The position numbers were made by a program, and so were the translations under genes. The notes under the pieces were generated by a model. The model was not told the DNA's origin and did no database searches. It saw only the letters and a program-made list of their open reading frames with translations. A DNA stretch of 63,949 bases, filler included, from Choristocarpus tenellus KU-1152 (Eukaryota; Protista; Phaeophyceae), in the NCBI GenBank assembly GCA_964200185.2. It is 9 parts of 9 records of this genome, joined end to end, with 100 filler letters (N's around TTAATTAATTAA, not from the genome) between each part and the next. Parts side by side here need not be neighbours in the genome. Positions count along the whole stretch, not along the records: positions 1 to 27,353 come from CAXNAD020000146.1; 8 more parts are not named here. The stretch is one strand, 5' to 3'. Shown here piece by piece: positions 1-12,400 of this stretch (position 1 is its first letter; every line of letters begins with the position of its first letter).

Positions 1-1405
1 CCTGGTGTAGAACCCCCCCCCCCTCCCAGATACTTTGGGTCTGCTCCTGTGACTATGCACCCTCTCATCTCATCATTATGCATGCGGTTGGCAATCTCTT
101 CACCCACGAAGTACATCCATTGCCATTACTATTAAAATCTACTATGTACATGCTATCACAGGAATTAGCTCCAACAGAACATTGTCATCAAGGATGACTA
201 CACACTTCCGTTAGATTTGTTTATGCACCCCATCATTAGTATAAAGGCAGAGTTGTTTTGTTACAAGGCTCTGGATACTGATTTGTGATTAATATTGACC
301 TGATAAGGCATAATATCTCTGCACCATTTAAAAGTTCTGGTGAAAAACGAAAGTAGTGTGTAGACATCATAGGTACTACAGAGGTGGATATTAGTACTAG
401 TTATGTTGGGCTAGATACAGACTGCTCTAGAATAGGGAATACAAAAACACATCTATTATTATAGTAGTACTTCCTTCTCCATAATGATTTCATGGACATT
501 GCCCGGGAAAGATGTGGGCTTCTGAATATATGTTACCGTGTATAAATGAAAATTAGGTTTGAAGTACTCCCAAGTTGGACCACAGTGCTGGTGGGGGTGA
601 GGCATATACAGGAGCATCACTACCATAGTTGGGCAGGACCATGTCCGAGATGACAATGGATAACTCCTGCTCAAGGTTTGCAACAATTAATAGTTGGAAC
701 AGAATGGTGGATGGCAGACTAAAAACAGGTAAGAACAAACAGCTACACAGACAAGCACTGGGAAAACTTACAGATTACATAGCAATTATATTATAACTAA
801 CACTACCCACAAACTTCTCAGCAATCTTTACTGTGGTGGACAGCTTTGAACGGAGAAACACCTGAAGATCAGCTGCTTCCCAAGTCAAACTATAATTGAC
901 AAACATGCCTCCCCAGGAGTGCTTTTTAAACAACATGAAATCAGGGAGGTCTTGATGGTGACAGGTGAGAGAGATTGGACCAAGGTCAGTAGCTGCCAAC
1001 AAGGAAAAATGCTGGTTGGTAGAGTATGTAATTAGTGTTCTATCATTAACAACTTCTACTCCAGCACCATTCCAGTGATTTAACAAAAAATCCCACACTC
1101 TGAAATAAACAAAGATCTACACTTTCAACAATAAAAAAATGGTTCGGCTATGAAAAATCACCATGACAAACACTGTTCTGATGCTTGACTACAATGATAA
1201 CACATAATGTGTCCAGATATACTAGAGCGACACAATGCCACATGCTACCAACGAGCACACAAGCAGTGAGGAAAAACAAATCCTATTATATTTTTCAAAT
1301 TGTATTAGCTCATCCACATCATGGGTGTGCTACTGATGTATTGGTATGCTCCTTGAAACCAATAATATTTTATTTTCTTCAAAGTCGTGCCAGTTGCCGA
1401 TACAG

Positions 1406-1457
1406 TCATTCCATGGGTGTCCCATGACTCCATTCATATTCTCGGTTCAGGGTGTAC
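1406..1457 (-). CDS. G6PD: G6PD alternative terminal exon 10b, encoding (G)[16 protein letters not shown]; in-frame readthrough extension LYRQLARL* to 1379
   Basis: Acceptor ...cgtgctgtggcag| at 1458-1459, same phase as 10a. TGA at 1408-1406 is followed by CTG TAT CGG CAA CTG GCA CGA CTT TGA. Confidence 0.8.
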
Positions 1458-4400
1458 CTGCCACAGCACGTAAGGGAGTATGTTCCACAGCAGAATTAAC
1501 ATGGTGAGGTTCATGCGTGATGGACTAGCTGGATGTTCCATGCGTCCACTTGTAGTCTCGGTTCAACATGTACCTGCCATAGCATGTCAAGGAGTATGGC
1601 CCACCATAGAAGGCTATGGTCAACATATGGGATGAATAAGACCACTCTAAAGTCACTATCAAGAAATGCTAGCATTTTCAAGGTAACTAAAGTCAAGTTA
1701 AAACCCTCTCACACCAGGAAACATTATCTAGATACAGACATGTTCCTATCTGGTAACTCAAACTACTACGTACCCCATCTTTGCTATCAGTTCATCACTC
1801 TCCGTTGGCCCCCTAGAGCCGTATGCGTATGGCAAAGTGGTTGCTTTCCCTTCCTCAATTTGTTTGAGGAGAGGAGTAAAAATCTTCCATGCTTCCAAAA
1901 GCTCATCACTGCGCACAAATGTAGCTTGTTTGCCCCGCAACACTTCCAGGATGAGGCGGGTATATGCTGCAGGGCTGTTACGGTGGGGAGAAAATAATTG
2001 CAGATACAGGAAGAATGTTGCGTGTGCGGAACAGCCTCAAAAGTACGACGAAGTGACGGGAAGGTAAGCACTGTTAGATATTCCATACTGTTATGCTCAC
2101 TTGTATGCTGTGGGGTAGCGATCGATGTATGTCAGGTCCAGGTCTGACTGCATGGGCTTGCTTTGAAGACCTGGGGCTTTGACATTGGTCTTGTAGTAAA
2201 TACTTTCATTAGGCTGCAACCGCATCACCAACTCATTACGGGGGCAAGGCTGGTCATCGAACATGAAGTTGCTCCCAGGTGTGTCCTTGAACTGGATACG
2301 GACCTGAGAAATACCATGTCAATAGTATATCAATGGCATGTCAATTACCATGTCTGAGAGAAACCTGAGTCAAAGAATCTCAGAACAAACTTCACCATTT
2401 TGTCAGATCTCCAGAATTTTCAAGCTTGACCATCCCAAAGTGACCTGTGTCTCCAAATCATAGTATAATGGAAGTTTATCATATACCTGAAATCTTTTAC
2501 AATATAGTATGCATTATGGCCCTTGTCCTCATTTCTACAATGAAGTGTAACACACCTCAGTCTTGCGCTCATTGAGGGCCTTCCCTGCTTTGAATATGAA
2601 TGGTACTCCTGCCCACCGTGGGTTGTTCACAAACAGGACACATGTTGCAAATGTGGGGCAGTTGGAGTCCTCGGGCACACCATCATCTGTCCAGAAAGAT
2701 TTGTATACAGTGGGCAACAGGGCTATAGTTTGGACAAAGTATGACAGAGTACAAAACACACCAAAACAATTGTCCATACAGCAAGATGGCACTTGAATCA
2801 ACAATGGGAGCGTACTCAAGATGTGTCACTCACCATCCTTGTATCCTGGGTGTTCACCATCCTCACTGGCCACGTACTGGCCTAATACCACATCCTCAAG
2901 GCGAACAGGAGCAGCAGCCTTGAGAACATTAACCTGCACTTGACATATTACAGCGATAAGTTCATATTTACATTTCAAGCCTGAACACGGACAAAGGACT
3001 TGACCTTGAAGGACCTAATCAGCGCAGAGATGACAAAACAAGCTTTGCCGGCTAGTCAAGTAAGGAAACCAAAGACTCCTATTAAAATTATTTTCCATCA
3101 ACATTTCATATTGCAACGAACTCGAGATTTGATCTGATTTTATTTTATTTGATACATCCCTCTTGGAGATTTCTACTATACAGAATATTTGGTTCTTGCC
3201 TGGACCAGCTTGAACCTACCCAACTTTTTTTATAGAACACAAAAAGTGAGTGCTAGTATGTGACTCTCCTTTGATGATCTAAAAATTCCCTCAAAGTCAA
3301 GAGCAGCATAGTCTAACCTTGGCATCACGGAGGAAGTCAGCAGATCCAGTGCCAGACACTCTCACTGGAGGCTCCATGGCAACCAGTGTGAAGACCTGAA
3401 TGCAAAAATTCCAAAAGCAAATAGCAAGACAAGATTAGACATAGATTCGTCTGTATTGCCAGATGTTTAACACAGGCTCGCAGAATGCAAGATTAACCCA
3501 TGGCAATACAACAAAACTTGAGTCAAATACCTGAATGAGATGGTTCTGAATAACGTCACGTATGATGCCATAATTATCAAAGTATCCACCACGTCCTTCA
3601 GTTCCAAAGTCTTCCTTGAAGGTGAACTGGACACTTTGGATAAAGTTACGGTTCCATGTGGGTTCGAACATCAAGTTTGAGAAACGCAACACCACCATGT
3701 TTTGTGTCATCTCTTTCCCCAGGTAGTGATCAATACGGTAGATGAACTTCTCCGTGAAGTACTCTCCAAGTCCGCTAGTGAGCTGACAGCAGAAAATGAT
3801 TAAGTCCGGAATACAGGTGGAAGTGAATATGTTGAGGAACAGAACTTGTTACAGACACAATTTGTTTGCATGACCAAAAAAATATCAATTGTGTTTACTT
3901 GCAGCTGTATGGTTTTGGGGAATGCCTAATAGTCTTTACTTGCCCATAATGGTCAGATAGCAAGCATCTGGTACAAGTTTTCTAGTAGTTCAGTTCACTG
4001 TCCGAGTAAAAAGACACCAATCAGATCTAACACTTAATATACCCAGAGAGCTAGAAAAACTATAAGGGTGGAAAGGGATGGTACACACCTCAAGTGCTGA
4101 ATCATAGTCATGCCCAAAGGGTTTCTCCACAATAAGGCGTGTGAAACCTGTTGAACTAATCCCTGTCTGCTTAATGGAGGATGCAGTATCCAGGAACACA
4201 TTTGGTGGAATTGCAAAATAAAACACACGATTGGCAACACCTCCAAGGCCAGACTTTTCCTCACGAATCTCGAGGTCTTTGATCATGGCCCCCATGTCCT
4301 CAGCTGAACCATAGCCGCCTGAAAGTGTTGGTTACAAGATATTTCATTTCCATGTTGTCAATTGATGAAATAGATCTCAATACCTCTGTACACGCACAGG

Positions 4401-5459
4401 TACTGGGCCTGCAAGTTCGTCCAGGCACAAATGATAATGATCTTTTTACTTTCAGATACACCAAAACAAATCCAAGGACCAATAAGAGCAATTAGTGTTG
4501 TCGATTGATCACATACCTCCAGGAAGGGTGGCAAGGGGTGGCTGTCTTATTTTAGTCTATGAAGGCAATTACCGTTCCTATCAAAGATCAAAGATAAACT
4601 ACCTGAAGTATAAACAACGCTTTGAGGGTCTACGTCGATTATTAGTGGGTAGATTTAGGTATTAAAAAGGACTCGGATCTTCATGAACACATATAAAGCG
4701 CCATAAAATATTACGGACACCGTCATACTCGAGATGATGTAGAGGTACACAGCAGCCAACTGACAAATATAAAAGTTTATAGCCCACATCTAATTACCAA
4801 CCCGCCTCTCCTTAAGTCTAAGGTCCACCTGCACGGTAGTGGACCAACTTCAAAAACTCTTCAACTTTGGGGTCAGCTTCTTTGGAGAGGTAAGGCCGGA
4901 GCTTTTCATGGAGTTGATTGTCCGTGATTTTTGATCGCGCATAGCCACAAATGATCACGTGCGGTGGAAGGAAGTCGTGGCAGAAGAGCTCAAATAGCGC
5001 AGGAAATGTCTGCAAGCAAGTGGAGGAGTCGAGCAGCAGGGTTCATAATATCATATTAGAAAATCAGGACACACAGGACATGATTGCAATCCGATACTAT
5101 TACCACTCTGAATGCCACCACCTCTACACAAAAACAACTCGCTATACCACTGTCAGGGGGTGGATCATATCAAAGCCTACATGCTCAGGTCTGTCTGTGA
5201 AATAGACTTGGGTCACGTTCAAACAATGCAAGACACCAGGCGGACAAAGCCCACCAAAAAGACCTCTATCCATAAAAGAAAGTTGCTCAGGGACCACAGA
5301 GTCAAACTGAATCAATGTATGGCGAATGTCATGACAATTGTGCGCAGAAGCAGAAGCCACCTTCTTTTTTGCCAGATCTCCACTGGCTCCAACGACTACC
5401 ACAGACAATGAACTGTGAAGGTATTCGCAGGAGTGATACTTGGATACGTTTTCAGTCAT
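1406..5459 (-). CDS. G6PD: Glucose-6-phosphate 1-dehydrogenase, cytosolic type, 10 exons with two alternative last exons
   Basis: Manual GT-AG exon model: 5459-5361, 5009-4829, 4318-4089, 3782-3531, 3395-3318, 2933-2834, 2686-2556, 2303-2101, 1974-1774, then 1573-1525 (10a) or 1457-1406 (10b). Phases are consistent. Motifs [72 protein letters not shown] and FVRSDEL..AW.IFTPLL are present. No N-terminal presequence. Confidence 0.97.
1525..1573 (-). CDS. G6PD: G6PD alternative terminal exon 10a, encoding (G)[15 protein letters not shown]
   Basis: Acceptor ...catgctatggcag| at 1574-1575, phase-compatible with the donor GG|GTACGT after 1774; stop TAG at 1527-1525. Confidence 0.8.
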
Positions 5460-6361
5460 GACCCCTTTTCTCTCAATTGCGGTTGGCTGGCCCACGTCTG
5501 CTGTTACCAGATTTCCCAGTAAGACTAACTAGTTGAGGCCTGTGAAGTACCAAGTTTTGAACTTGAGACTAAATGGCGAATTTGTCTTCTCAAGGTTGGA
5601 TTGTTGATGAAATATTGGTCGGAGTATTGTTGTGGAGTGGTTAGATGGTAGAATAATATTGTAGTAGTTGAGTACAATAATATTGTAGTAGTTGAGTACA
5701 AACCATAGTACTTTTAATCAAAACTTAGTCATTTCCACCTGATACCCTCATGCAGATACATTTTGCGGGAAATTGGAAGTATTATTATAGTAGTTATCAT
5801 TCAAAATTCTCGTTCAGATCATTTTCACGGGAAATTGTAAGTGTTTATTATAGGTTTGGTAGGGTTGCAACCCAAATTATGATTTGAAAAAAACAAAAAC
5901 ATGAACACAATATTTCCGAACCAACAGTCCGAGTCATGCATCTGGAGACTATTGCTCCGACCCATCATCAAGGATAATCTCAGCAAGTACATTTATCAAG
6001 GAGTTGCAATCAATACAGCTCAAGCGAGACACAAACACACATCATCTCCAAAATCTCGTCGACTCAAAGAAGAGCCTATAACTTATCTTCCAGGTAACTT
6101 CGCTTTTACTTTACGTCTTGGCTGGGGTGATTTCAAGATTTTCTTTGTTGTGTTATGGTATATAACAATCTGCTGCAAGAGGAGGGAATAGCTCTTTACT
6201 CATGGTGGCTTCATAAGATATCCTTGAACTCTCTTGGACACAGACAAAGGCTTGAAAGCTCAAGCAGAGGTCATGCTCATGTCCATTAGTCAGACAAAAC
6301 TAACTCAAACTTCTTCGTCAACGACGCCCTTCACGTAGGACCCAGGAGCCAGTTCAACAAG
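5460..6361. promoter_or_regulatory. Putative bidirectional promoter and 5'UTRs shared by G6PD and 6PGD
   Basis: 902 bp between divergent ATGs. Contains a tandem duplication of AATAATATTGTAGTAGTTGAGTAC (about 5652-5700) and two copies of a CGGGAAATTG.AAGT..TTATTATAG motif (about 5761-5790 and 5822-5853). Confidence 0.6.
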
Positions 6362-9300
6362 ATGGAGGCTTTGTCTGATGTTGGCTTGTATGGCCTTGCT
6401 GTCATGGGACAGAACTTTGCTCTTAACATGGCCAGCCACGGATTCCGCGTCTCCGTGTGTAATCGGTCTCCTGAGAAGGTCGATGCAACCGTTGAGCGTG
6501 CCAAGGAAGAGGGTGATCTCCCTCTTGTGGGATTCAAGGACCCTAAGGAATTTGTGATGTCCCTCTCGACTCCCCGCAAGATTATTATCCTGGTTCAGGC
6601 CGGCAAGCCTGTGGATGCCACAATCGATGTCCTGTCTGCGCACATGGAGGTGAGATATACGAGTTCTACTGCCTTGACTGTTTTCTGTACACAGGAGTTC
6701 CAATTGTCGGCATTCTGCAGCGTAGTGCAGTGGTCGAATATTGCGCTGGATTTGCCTACTTCTGCCACGATTGGGCTCCAGTATGTGTTGTCTTACAGAG
6801 GAAGGCGATGAGATGTTAATATCCAACCAATAGTACAACTCTCCTGACTATTGCTCCTTCACGGTAATGAACTATGTGCATCACTCTTCAGCCTGGTGAT
6901 GTTCTTGTAGACGGAGGTAATGAGTGGTTTCCCAACTCACAGCGCCGGGGAGAGGAACTTGAGGCCAAGTCCATCCTCTTCGTGGGCATGGGTATCTCTG
7001 GTGGGGAGGAAGGAGCCCGTAATGGCCCATCCCTCATGCCGGGTGGGCCAAAGAAAGCATTTGATCTCCTGGAGCCCATCATCACGAAGTGTGCTGCCCA
7101 GGTGTGTGTATACAATGGAATAGTGCAAGCATCCTGTCTGCCTCTGGTGAAGTTTTGTACCACTCTGTTGTTTTTCTGAATTCTTAAGAGTACATGTGGC
7201 ATGTTGGGAGGAGTGTTATTCCTTTGCGAACTTCTGATCAGTTGAATGTGTTGCACATATAAATAGGCATAAAATTTAAAAGAGTTAGCAAGCTATTTCC
7301 AAACCCTCACACAAGCACAACCCCGCTTAACAGTAAAAAGTTTCATGAATGTACTAGGTGGACGATGGACCATGCACAACATATCTTGGTTCTATTGGCT
7401 CTGGAAACTATGTGAAGATGGTCCACAATGGCATTGAATATGGCGACATGCAACTCATTGCTGAGGTGTGTACAGAAATATAAATGGTCAGGATTATGCT
7501 TGCTCATTGTGCCTTAAGATTTTTTTTTTGCAAAAATCCTTCCTCGGGAGCGAAAAAAGTGCTTTTGGCAAGAGTAGTAAGTAGTAGTACTTGTGGAGGA
7601 CATTAGTCAATTTTAGTGTTTTTAGTGCTGTACGTTTGGCAACACCTTTCCTATTTCCCTTACCTTCCAGGTTTACGATGTCTTGAAGAATGTGGCAGGG
7701 TTGTCAAACGAAGAGCTGGCGTCAACGTTTGAGAGCTGGAACACAGGAGAGCTGCAGGTAAGCTCAGGAGTGGTTCCTGCAATTAAGTATTGTCTAAAGA
7801 TGATAATGCAAAGGTCAAGAATCACTTTGACATCACAGGCACTTGAAAACAGAAATGGAGTCTTCTATTGTGGACCTAACCTCTAGCCTCTATTGGGTGA
7901 TTTGGAATGCTGCAGAGCTTCCTTGTGGAGATCACTGCATCAATTTTTGGGAAGAAAGATGACAAGACAGATGAAGGTTATGTTGTGGACAAGATCCTTG
8001 ATAAGACAGGTGAATTTGGATGCATCCAGAAGTATATTGTATGTCTGATGTGGAAAATGATTGCCGTTCCATTCAATATCTTCAATCCTGGAACAATAGC
8101 CTTCACCTACTGACACAAATCGCAGTCTACCTGCATAGGTCTGACACAAAGGTGAACATCCTTTGTAGTGGTCACAGTTGAACGACACAACATAATTCTA
8201 CTGTAATTGTAGAAGTAGAAAGATTTATGAGTTGGCTGGGTGGATTGCCTAGACATGCTCAAAGAGTTCCGATGTGCGCTTGTTGTAGGTATGAAGGGGA
8301 CAGGGCGCTGGACTGTACAGGAAGCAGCAGAGCGAAGTACTGCTGCTCCCACTATGGCAGCTGCCCTGGATGCTAGGTACCTAAGTGGTAGGAAGGACGA
8401 GAGGATCAGGGCAGCCACAGTACTTTCTGGACCCTCAGAAATTCCTGCTGTTGCCAAGGAGCAGCTGGTTACGGACCTGAAGGCTGCTCTATACTGCTCT
8501 AAAGTCTGCTCTTATGCACAGGTTTGGATAGGTATCAGCATTGCTGAGTTTGGAGTGTGGTATTTGTTATTGTTACTAAAACGAAAAGAGGGGAGGGGAG
8601 GGGGCAGCAAAGCGATTCCAGTCTGTTTTGTTCTGTTGATTGAAATGTAGAGGTCTATTCATGTCACAAAATTGCTCATTGCACTCAAGTATAAGGACTG
8701 TTGAAGAATACCACTGCTGTACAGCAAGCTGATTAGTAATTTATTTATCTAGTTCAATAATCTGCTTTGTTTTTTGTAACTGATTTTGTGTGTGACTGCA
8801 CTCTTGTTCTCTTTGCTTGGTTGACAGGGCATGTGTCTGATCAAGAGCGCATCAGAGCACTTTGAGTGGGGTGTGGACCTTGGTGAATGTGCACGTATCT
8901 GGAAGGGAGGTTGCATCATCCGGGCAGCCTTCCTTGATGACATCAAGAGGGCATACAAGATTGATTCAAGCCTATCCAATATGCTAGTCGATCCATTTTT
9001 TGCTTCCCAACTTTTGGAGCGCCAGGCTGCATGGAGGAGGGTGGTTTCCCTCTGCGTGGCAAGTGGCATTGCTGCTCCAGCCATGACAGCATCTTTGTCG
9101 TACTTTGACTCCTACCGTCGAGCTCGCCTACCAGCCAACCTGGTGCAGGTGATGAGGCCAGAGTGTTTTGTAGTGCTGATGTAAACACACAGATTTGTTG
9201 TTTGTGCATAGAGGTGTGATGTGTTGTTAAATTGGCTCTGTGATATGTGATTGGGACTGTCTACTGAAGCTCCTTCTATGCTGACCTTGACCATCTTCTG

Positions 9301-9456
9301 TTGTTCAACAATGTTTATGATTTGCAGGCCCAGCGTGACTTCTTTGGTGCGCACACCTATGAACGGATAGATATGGAGGGCACTTACCATTGCCTTTGGG
9401 ATGTCACCCACAAGGATATTGGCGATGTTTCTGGGCGCATTGCTGGGGAATTGTGA
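6362..9456 (+). CDS. PGD: 6-phosphogluconate dehydrogenase, decarboxylating (NADP+), cytosolic type, 8 exons
   Basis: Exons 6362-6649, 6892-7101, 7358-7465, 7671-7757, 7916-8009, 8289-8521, 8828-9148, 9328-9456, all GT-AG. Motifs [74 protein letters not shown] and [14 protein letters not shown]. Confidence 0.97.
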
Positions 9457-12400
9457 AGTTGACACCAGGCATGCCACATACACAAGGTTGTTTCAGTGGG
9501 GTGGGTATATGAGTATAGCGTAGTCACAAGCCCCTGCTTGCTAATAGTTCTTTCCCTTGCGTTACCATCTTACAATGGCCTTCATTCGCCACATATGTGA
9601 CAATCCAGCACCTTTTGTATACAGCTGTACCTTTTTATAGTACTGTAGCAAGTACATAGAGGTTAGGCAACCAGTCAGATATTTGACCAGCTGTACAAAT
9701 GCAGATGATATCAACAGTGAAATAGAGGTGCGGGAGAGGGTTTTCATTCAAGGTGGAAAACTGGGAAAAGGTTGACCTTGCTTTCTTCTGGTTGCAGTGT
9801 CCACTTGTTGTCTCTTCAGAATTGATTATATATGGACATGGAACATTGTTTTATTCCGCGTTTTGGGGAACCTACAGCAACCAAGCAGTTTTTGCAATTG
9901 TATGTGTGACTGGACAGACAATTACATCTAATGAGAACATTCATACTTGCAACTATGACATGTGCGAGCTATATTGAATCCAAACATTTGCAAATTTTTG
10001 TGTATGTGCTCTGCCTTTGCAATCCCCATTCGTCTAGTGTGATTTTTGTCTTGCTGATGAGTATCACGCTTCTCCTTCCCTTAACAAATGCACAGACATG
10101 GTCATCCAATCCCACCACCTATGCCATATCAAGAGTTGTCAACACTAACATTGTGCTTGAGTACTTCTACTGTAGCAAATGGGGATACTCTCTGTGATCT
10201 GCAAAAAAACATGACATGTGGTTGCTAATATGCAGGAATGTTTCTGTCAAATGTAGATAGTTATTATTACATAGTTTTTCTTGATTGCTTTCACATCACT
10301 CTGACTTGTCCCAAAACTGTAGCTAGAAGGTACAGGAAAGGCAGTGACACAGTACTTCAGAAAATATAAAACAGAAATGTCATTCTCAAGGAAATAAAAA
10401 CATAAGTAACTAAGATGAGAACCTAAGGAATAACACAACCAATGGCTGGGACAAGACTTGTCCATCTGTCCACGTCCCATGAGAAGAGGGGGAAATGAAA
10501 AGGAGAAACCAGTGTCATTGTCAGTCCATGAAATATGAACACCACTCCTCACATATCACACAAAGGAGAGAGGAACTGTGAAGAATAGTCAACCCAAAAA
10601 CGAAATTCATAAGAAGAGGTACATTCAGCAACCAGTAGGCAGTTACGAGTGCGCATATGCCCTGATCTTCTTGGGCTGCCTTACCTAGCATGATATATGT
10701 AAGTTATTTTGTCTGCTTGAAGATGTTATTTGTCAATGAAGTTCTTTATTCCATCGACTACAGATTTGTATCACTTGGATTGGTTTGTTACTACTGTATT
10801 TTGTCCCTCAAAACATCCTGAATGATCCTTTATGATATAGTACTTGGACATGACTGGGTTGGTGTAAACTCCTTCACTGGTATGCACTGTGGTGAGTGAA
10901 GATGTAGAAAATTATAGGGGTAAGAACACACCATTGATGAAGGGAAAGCCTTGGTAACTCAAACCAGACTGTACACGCTACATTGTCCAAGTGAACACAA
11001 AACCCACACTCCAACAGAACTGGCAGATGACTGATAAAATCTTCTCAGGCATGTCAAGCTGGCAAGCATATCCCGCAGGAGATTGCTGTAAACAGAATCA
11101 TATGGTTTTGATAGACCAATAGAATACATGAACAAAGAGACATGCTTTTACGTGCTTTTCCTGCCTGACCTCCTGGAGGGCATGTAGGACATAATGTTCA
11201 CTGTGGAGTGTTGAGACCAGGAATCATGGATCATTTTCCTGTTCCAGGTACAAGCATCCTCCCACTTATCATGAAACATTCAGAAGCATTTTACTGGCTT
11301 GTTCCACAAGCGGGGTAGGCAACAGGTAACAAGTACAACTAGTGATACAGCAACAATTAGCTATAGCAGTAGGTTGTATGAAGAGCGATAGTACTCTGTG
11401 ATCTTAGTGCCTCTGATCACGAGCTGGGATAGTCCCCAGACTAAAGAGAAGAATTATATTAGTAGCTATCACTAGACGTGAAGTATTGGATATTTGTGAT
11501 ATTGTCACACAAACACATACCCCTTCCCTTCTACCTATAGTCCAAAATATTGGCTCAGGATGATGTGTGTGTATTGATACTGTTGGGCAGGGCCCTGGCC
11601 TATGATGCCGTTACTAAGGTCAAATATATGCAAAGGCCCACCAGCTACACAATTACGTTTCATTCAATTATCGATTTTTCCACAGGCAGACACAGACCCC
11701 GTGACCTCCTTCCAAGGCACAGCTCATCTCTGCTACTGAGGCAGAAGACCCCCTTGTCCTTTTGGTCCTGCTGGGGGGGGCACTGCGGTTGCTTGGTGGT
11801 TCAGGTTTTCCTTTTTTCACCCCAGCACAGTCCCCACAGGTTTACCTGGGAACGGATGTCCGTTGTTTATTTTCTCCTGCGGATGCTGAGGTACAATGTC
11901 TACTGCCTCACAGATCTTCTCCTGCTCTTTTCCCCTCAGCACAGCCTACACGTGTTACCCATGCACAGTATTCCGCCCTGTAGTACCCTACTCTGGCTCC
12001 GGGCAAGAAGAAAACATCAGAAAGTACCCCTTCCTGGTCAAGGTCAGCAGTAGGCCATCACATATGTTGCTTTTTTTTTTGCTTCAGGAGGATTTTTGCT
12101 CTACAGCATTTTTGGAACAATTGATCCAATTGTGTAAAATTATCTTGGAGGGGTAGAATGGTGGAGACAATGAGTGAAGAAATATTGCGACTTGAGGTTA
12201 AAGGACCAAGTACACAAGAGGATATTATTGCAAGGGACACTTAGGAGAGAAAAAAAAGGCAACATCGCCTTGTGTTGGTCTGAGCCACAGATACAAACAC
12301 AGTCACATAAATGGAGCACAGGCCATATTCCAACCTTGGTCTGTCTGGTTGCATTGATTAGAGTGTGGATGGATCCCACAGCTCCCTATAGAGGCAAACA

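Follow-up and report, generated by a model that had tools for sequence, protein, structure and literature searches.

In Choristocarpus tenellus KU-1152 (Phaeophyceae), a 116-bp tandem duplication at the end of the glucose-6-phosphate dehydrogenase (G6PD) gene has, as we think likely, given rise to two competing 3' splice acceptors, the downstream one leading to a C-terminal tail (10b) with a leaky stop codon and a concealed type 1 peroxisomal targeting signal (PTS1) behind it, the upstream one to a tail (10a) that lacks this arrangement, with both mRNAs formed at similar levels. The gene comprises 10 coding exons on the minus strand at 1406..5459 of the window, by which we mean the whole analysed stretch of 63,949 nucleotides, filler included, that joins 9 parts of 9 records of genome assembly GCA_964200185.2 (positions 1 to 27,353 come from CAXNAD020000146.1). 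Positions count along the window, and all features of the G6PD gene given below are on the minus strand.

The duplicated end of the G6PD gene and its transcripts

Exon 9 (1974-1774), the last constitutive exon, ends in ...LIAKMG (AAG ATG GG) in phase 2 and is followed by intron 9, of which the single donor GTACGT at 1773 serves both acceptors (1573 and 1457), yielding an intron of 200 nt with the 10a acceptor (1574..1773) or of 316 nt with the 10b acceptor (1458-1773). The acceptors lie 116 nt apart and both are followed by G TAC... in identical phase. The upstream copy of the 116-bp unit (1530..1645) consists of about 70 nt of intron, with a branch-like TTGAC and the AG, followed by 46 nt of 10a, and the downstream copy (1414..1529) holds the 10b acceptor region (CTTAC ... 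AG at 1458) and 44 nt of 10b. The coding part of cassette 10a (1525..1573) specifies G and 15 residues up to the stop TAG at 1527-1525, which is followed by TCC, and that of cassette 10b (1406..1457) G and 16 residues up to the stop TGA at 1408-1406, both stop positions being corrected here relative to the initial annotation. With 10a the predicted protein has 507 aa, with 10b 508 aa.

The initial annotation had described two cassettes 116 bp apart, with similar acceptors, the same phase and intact frames, and this description was borne out. A repeat search returned two copies whose starts lie 116 nt apart and which are 76% identical across 82 nt, and local alignment of the two 116-bp units gave z = 8.9, a score reached in none of 500 shuffles. 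The acceptor sequences, CATACTCCTTGACATGCTATGGCAG and CATACTCCCTTACGTGCTGTGGCAG, are identical at 21 of 26 positions, and each acceptor has a YTNAY branch-like motif 16-17 nt before the AG. The unit matches one location only in the 164-Mb genome, which rules out a repeat or transposon as its origin. In two DNA runs, X1 and X2 (the latter from a second sample), Logan contigs cross both cassettes without any difference from the window, and an assembly artefact or collapsed alleles are thereby ruled out as well. The start of intron 9 (GTACGTAG...) was considered as a third copy of the cassette, as in intron gain by tandem duplication, and rejected, its local alignment being no better than that of shuffles. 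In their coding parts the two cassettes differ at 13 of 45 nt and keep 9 of 15 residues with the frame open, an outcome found in about 4% of trials with random substitution, and the ratio of non-synonymous to synonymous rates between them (NG86 dN/dS) is 0.24, with 5 synonymous and 8 non-synonymous changes. These figures come from a tiny sample of 15 codons and hint at constraint on both cassettes.

Use of both acceptors is seen in X3, a single RNA sample read as Logan contigs (k = 31). Of the three runs in which this stretch is present, none is recorded as RNA, and X1 and X2 behave as DNA. Every G6PD intron is GT..AG and all of them are skipped in X3 contigs, for which reason we take X3 to be RNA or cDNA. 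Both junctions anticipated in the initial annotation are present in this one sample at comparable depth, 1774>1573 (10a) in a contig of depth 816.1 and 1774>1457 (10b) in a contig of depth 618.7, the raw joints 1569>1770 and 1453>1770 having been brought to 1573/1774 and 1457/1774 by a cut offset of +4. The two depths add up to about that of the exon-9 contigs (1152-1422), and the 10a and 10b transcripts look roughly equal in amount, at about 57:43 by contig depth only.

The same contigs bear on the layout of the transcript end, for which the initial annotation had proposed two alternative last exons. X3 contig 10, a long contig that covers the 3' untranslated region (UTR), terminates exactly at 1458, which we read as the merge of a spliced path (exon 9 to 10b) with a contiguous path (10a onward). 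The bin 1462-1615 has a depth of 572, as would be expected from unbroken coverage of 1462-1573 at about 800, and no AATAAA-like signal occurs in 1458-1524, the interval from the 10a stop to the 10b acceptor. From contig ends and bin depths, the 10a mRNA appears to continue through 10b, in which case 1458-1524 would be 3' UTR in 10a transcripts, and we infer from the contigs that the gene has two alternative 3' splice sites, 116 nt apart, within one terminal exon, and not two last exons. A third end, GYVVV*, had also been foreseen upon retention of intron 9; it is indeed encoded by the sequence running into the intron, but the intron-9 bin (1616-1769) has a depth of 0, retention thus being unseen in this one RNA run.

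X3 contigs of depth 16-63 cross introns 5, 3 and 2 (2906-3343, 3755-4118 and 4292-4857), where exons stand at about 1000-1900, and point to a little G6PD RNA that is unspliced or retains introns. One X3 contig (1051 nt, depth 308; 408-1458, minus strand) extends from the 10b acceptor past 1000 and on for about 590 nt, so that either a 3' UTR of about 1 kb or more than one poly(A) site is implied. Only about 35 nt past the readthrough extension described below, around 1370, there is an AATAAA.

The predicted readthrough signal and its conservation

Cassette 10b ends in the stop context TGA CTG (1408-1403), which matches the leaky UGA CU pattern, a context that in Ustilago and HeLa cells needs no further element to drive efficient readthrough (PMC4207609). 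The in-frame extension beyond it (1379..1405; CTG TAT CGG CAA CTG GCA CGA CTT, or LYRQLARL) closes with the candidate PTS1 tripeptide ARL, fitting the pattern [SAC][KRH][LM] directly before the next stop, a second TGA at 1381-1379 that is followed by A. By chance such a tripeptide closes 7 of 2162 stop-to-stop segments in the window (0.3%). The stramenopile Phaeodactylum has a predicted peroxisomal protein for which ARL is given as the putative PTS1 (PMC3178647). No PTS1 is present in the in-frame continuation past the 10a stop (TAG TCC), and peroxins are encoded in the genome, with Pex14 and members of the Pex2/12 family.

Relatives were sought with exon 9 alone in a representative library and in a word-indexed collection, and the contigs of the closest relatives were then read. 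Among named sequences the nearest are those of stramenopiles (Mucochytrium, Heterosigma), and the clade formed by the window and its relatives is probably a stramenopile one. Eight distinct relatives share 68-80% identity in exon 9, and in all eight the G6PD open reading frame closes with TGA and a C behind it, as CTN in seven of them; with the window included, this amounts to TGA and C in 9 of 9 clade genes and CT in 8 of 9. Behind this stop each of the eight has an in-frame extension of 7-14 codons that ends in SKL or SRL and then a second TGA. The extensions vary in sequence and length, with frame, tripeptide and stop context preserved, and a C comes after the second stop in just one of the nine genes. 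As a control, the tails of 27 more distant G6PD genes were read from metagenome contigs, yielding one readthrough PTS1 and one direct PTS1. The earlier claim that 10b alone carries a readthrough PTS1 stands, with the layout shared by 8 of 8 relatives versus 1 of 27 distant genes. Coincidence is a very unlikely source of the 10b PTS1, because the same combination of TGA-C(T) and extension recurs in every one of the eight relatives, and a predicted readthrough-dependent PTS1 on G6PD is conserved across the clade.

Direct signals occur in further relatives, with L012 ending in -QSKL (10575-10723) and Heterosigma P0013 in -ESKL. About 7 of 110 eukaryotic G6PD tails end directly in a canonical PTS1 (SKL, SKM, ARL, SHL, AKL, SRL) versus 0.3% by chance, tails of this kind including those of L012, P0013, P0042, P0045, P0049, P0099, P0101, P0146 and L054, and a predicted C-terminal route of G6PD to peroxisomes seems to have evolved more than once. 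L050 (metagenome contig Ga0073960_10021435, about 1715-1800), a much more distant G6PD with 61% identity in exon 9, has a different tail, in which TGA CTG is followed by LLVHRSKL*, and this readthrough PTS1 may have originated independently.

Comparison with the relatives also gives the duplication a direction. Cassette 10b resembles the relatives (cf. YDWSH..) in its acidic residue before W, its S/H after W and its TGA CT with extension, and it runs directly into the 3' UTR; 10a stops at the first stop just beyond the duplication junction. The likeness to relatives and the contiguity with the 3' UTR indicate that 10b is, by this comparison of sequences, the ancestral end and 10a a derived, lineage-specific copy without PTS1. 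Intron 9 predates the duplication, since the duplicated unit includes about 70 nt of it. An intron at the intron-9 site is missing from all relatives examined, nine of them reading straight through ..KMGY.., and L060, with a single tail too, has an intron two codons upstream of that site.

Proposed mechanism, alternatives and known systems

We propose that duplication of the end of intron 9 together with the first 46 nt of the last exon, 116 bp in all, created the two competing acceptors. Splicing to the downstream acceptor would then give the ancestral C-terminus and mostly the 508-aa cytosolic enzyme, and readthrough of the 10b TGA CT would add eight residues ending in ARL to give a minor 517-aa form. 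The PTS1 receptor would bring this form, a small share of the enzyme, into peroxisomes, the rest remaining cytosolic. Splicing to the upstream acceptor would give a 507-aa enzyme with a near-equivalent tail, a TAG T stop and no signal, the 10b cassette serving as 3' UTR. G6PD is an oligomeric enzyme and piggy-back import into peroxisomes is established for other enzymes; extended subunits might likewise carry unextended G6PD subunits along, 10a subunits among them, and the initial annotation's designation of 10a as purely cytosolic is therefore too strong. The genome's 6-phosphogluconate dehydrogenase (6PGD) and 6-phosphogluconolactonase have neither a direct nor a readthrough PTS1, so that only the first NADPH-yielding step would be sent to peroxisomes.

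Several points weigh against this proposal. The case for actual readthrough and peroxisomal import of the 10b form is made from sequence. The third base after the 10b stop is G, where A boosts readthrough further (PMC4207609), and, with two enzymes that lack a PTS1, nothing indicates that the oxidative pentose phosphate branch is complete in peroxisomes. The duplicated cassette is absent from all relatives found, the motif Y..N..Y.W occurring once in each of nine, and no closer relative with the duplication emerged from the representative search, the word search or the metagenome scan; conservation of the switch, for which the initial annotation had looked to other species, can accordingly not be shown. 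The selection that it had suggested for both copies retains in its favor the dN/dS of 0.24 and the kept Y..N..Y.W residues, but for 10a the Fisher test gives p = 0.09 on 15 codons, with the duplication in no relative. On the RNA side, the depths read from X3 contigs are rough, and transcript starts, ends and regulation are not readable from them, while the shorter side of the junction contigs measures 25-29 nt, less than the 31-nt rule. Such short sides, though still a weakness, are to be expected where a k = 31 de Bruijn graph forks, the cassettes having their first five bases in common: short sides and ambiguous bases together make k-1 = 30, and the k-1 pattern recurs at other G6PD junctions wherever low-level unspliced contigs accompany spliced ones.

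One alternative, which we regard as possible but hold with some doubt, accepts the PTS1 of 10b as real and takes 10a to be a neutral by-product, the duplication having made an equally good acceptor that is used at random, with 10a diluting 10b. Such an origin would suit the near identity of the acceptors (21/26), a lineage-specific duplication that is absent in nine relatives, a 10a tail that ends at the first stop shortly past the duplication junction, weak evidence for selection (15 codons, p about 0.04-0.09) and a single RNA sample. It sits less well with the age of the copies, which differ by about 27% in the coding part and, further upstream, align only with gaps; despite this age, 10a keeps its AG, branch-like motif, frame and Y..N..Y.W residues. 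As about half of the transcripts, 10a would moreover be a large load if harmful or useless.

We infer regulation, or a selective value of the choice between 10a and 10b, with still more reserve. It appears rather unlikely that splice-site choice gates the readthrough-dependent PTS1 as a regulated two-tier control of peroxisomal G6PD, built in one step by the duplication, in which light, oxidative stress or life stage would set acceptor choice and hence the share of G6PD open to readthrough-dependent import. Both forms are expressed and they differ exactly in the leaky stop and PTS1, and regulated splice-dependent peroxisomal targeting has precedent, for instance in pumpkin hydroxypyruvate reductase (reviewed in PMC3798809), but the RNA comes from one sample, halving the template would have a small effect if readthrough amounts to only a few percent, and oligomeric piggy-back import would blur the difference between 10a and 10b.

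That the conserved in-frame TGA stands for selenocysteine, reflects a variant code or is spliced out is highly improbable: selenoproteins, too, are marked by an in-frame TGA behind which the frame is conserved, but 1-1800 contains no selenocysteine insertion sequence (SECIS) or other Rfam match and the residues flanking the TGA vary, with no redox motif; the extension ends in TGA in 9 of 9 and 6PGD likewise ends in TGA, so that TGA acts as a stop; extensions of 21-42 nt are too short for an intron; and the conserved +4 C and +5 U fit the known readthrough context.

Set against known systems, the preferred reading, two acceptors of which one leads to a leaky stop with concealed PTS1, combines two mechanisms that are known singly. 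Cryptic PTS1 motifs reached by UGA CU readthrough have been described for Pgk1, Tpi1, Rpe1 and Art1 of Ustilago maydis and for human LDHB and MDH1 (PMC4207609, PMC4359377). As in those cases, the arrangement on G6PD is UGA followed by CU and a short extension ending in a canonical PTS1, both conserved across species, on a central metabolic dehydrogenase that is mainly cytosolic. It differs from the Ustilago and human cases in the enzyme, in the probable stramenopile clade, in G as the third base after the stop, and in being known here from sequence. Splicing exposes peroxisomal signals in Ustilago maydis GAPDH, Yarrowia Mdh (acceptors 4 nt apart), Candida albicans Gnd1 (a type 2 signal, PTS2) and the pumpkin reductase (PMC3798809), where, as here, the choice between nearby splice sites at one mRNA end decides the potential for a peroxisomal signal. 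Whereas splicing exposes the signal directly in these cases, in G6PD it selects either a tail with leaky stop and hidden PTS1 or a TAG-T tail, so that splicing and readthrough are stacked, and the acceptors stem from a 116-bp duplication that copied the coding cassette too. Homologous same-phase cassettes of which one is translated per mRNA are also the hallmark of tandemly duplicated alternative exons. Unlike mutually exclusive exons, however, the G6PD cassettes are terminal and joined through alternative 3' splice sites, the upstream choice leaving the downstream copy untranslated, and unlike alternative last exons they appear to be without separate poly(A) sites. In Arabidopsis, G6PD1 reaches peroxisomes with G6PD4/thioredoxin (Trx), and G6PD5 reaches the endoplasmic reticulum through alternative splicing (PMC12125578, PMC9478949); there, too, one G6PD gene serves several compartments, with peroxisomal NADPH supply as the presumed purpose, but plants use internal signals, partner proteins and N-terminal splice variants and not a C-terminal readthrough PTS1.

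What is new is a clade-wide predicted readthrough PTS1 on G6PD, with alternative acceptors from a tandem duplication stacked on top. In a limited library, where absence is not proof, we found no report of a readthrough or splice-exposed PTS1 at the C-terminus of G6PD, nor of a readthrough PTS1 in stramenopiles. Peroxisomes depend on a supply of NADPH and have for decades been reported to contain G6PD activity, while the route into peroxisomes of proteins without an obvious signal is mostly unclear. A leaky stop with a hidden PTS1 would offer a simple and testable account of peroxisomal G6PD, would make G6PD one more of the few metabolic enzymes targeted by readthrough and would extend the mechanism beyond fungi and animals. 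The two mRNAs of this one gene, differing essentially in the reachability of the hidden signal, would constitute a natural experiment and would illustrate how a small tandem duplication can yield a new isoform in one step.

Gene structure and surroundings

The coding exons of G6PD are exon 1 (5459-5361), exon 2 (5009-4829), exon 3 (4318-4089), exon 4 (3782-3531), exon 5 (3395-3318), exon 6 (2933-2834), exon 7 (2686-2556), exon 8 (2303-2101), the exon 9 given above and the terminal coding part at 1573-1525 (10a) or 1457-1406 (10b). Exon lengths sum to coding lengths of 1524 nt (10a) and 1527 nt (10b), both in frame. Searches were made by single exon, and the Pfam matches, three to G6PD_N (PF00479) and four to G6PD_C (PF02781), come in order on one contig at 34.8-88.4 bits, all above the curated cut-offs. 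A Pfam profile search detected one G6PD locus in the 164-Mb genome.

Head-to-head with G6PD lies the 6PGD gene (6361..9456, plus strand), which ends ..IAGEL TGA AGT TGA. The two genes are divergent, with about 900 bp between their ATGs (5459-6361), and this order recurs in the metagenomic relative L012 (2747-2920 and 10001-10723); the head-to-head placement suggests a shared bidirectional promoter for two NADPH-producing steps. At the extreme edge of the contig, about 11 consecutive C (G on the minus strand) at 12-22 are probably the reason why the assembly stops there.

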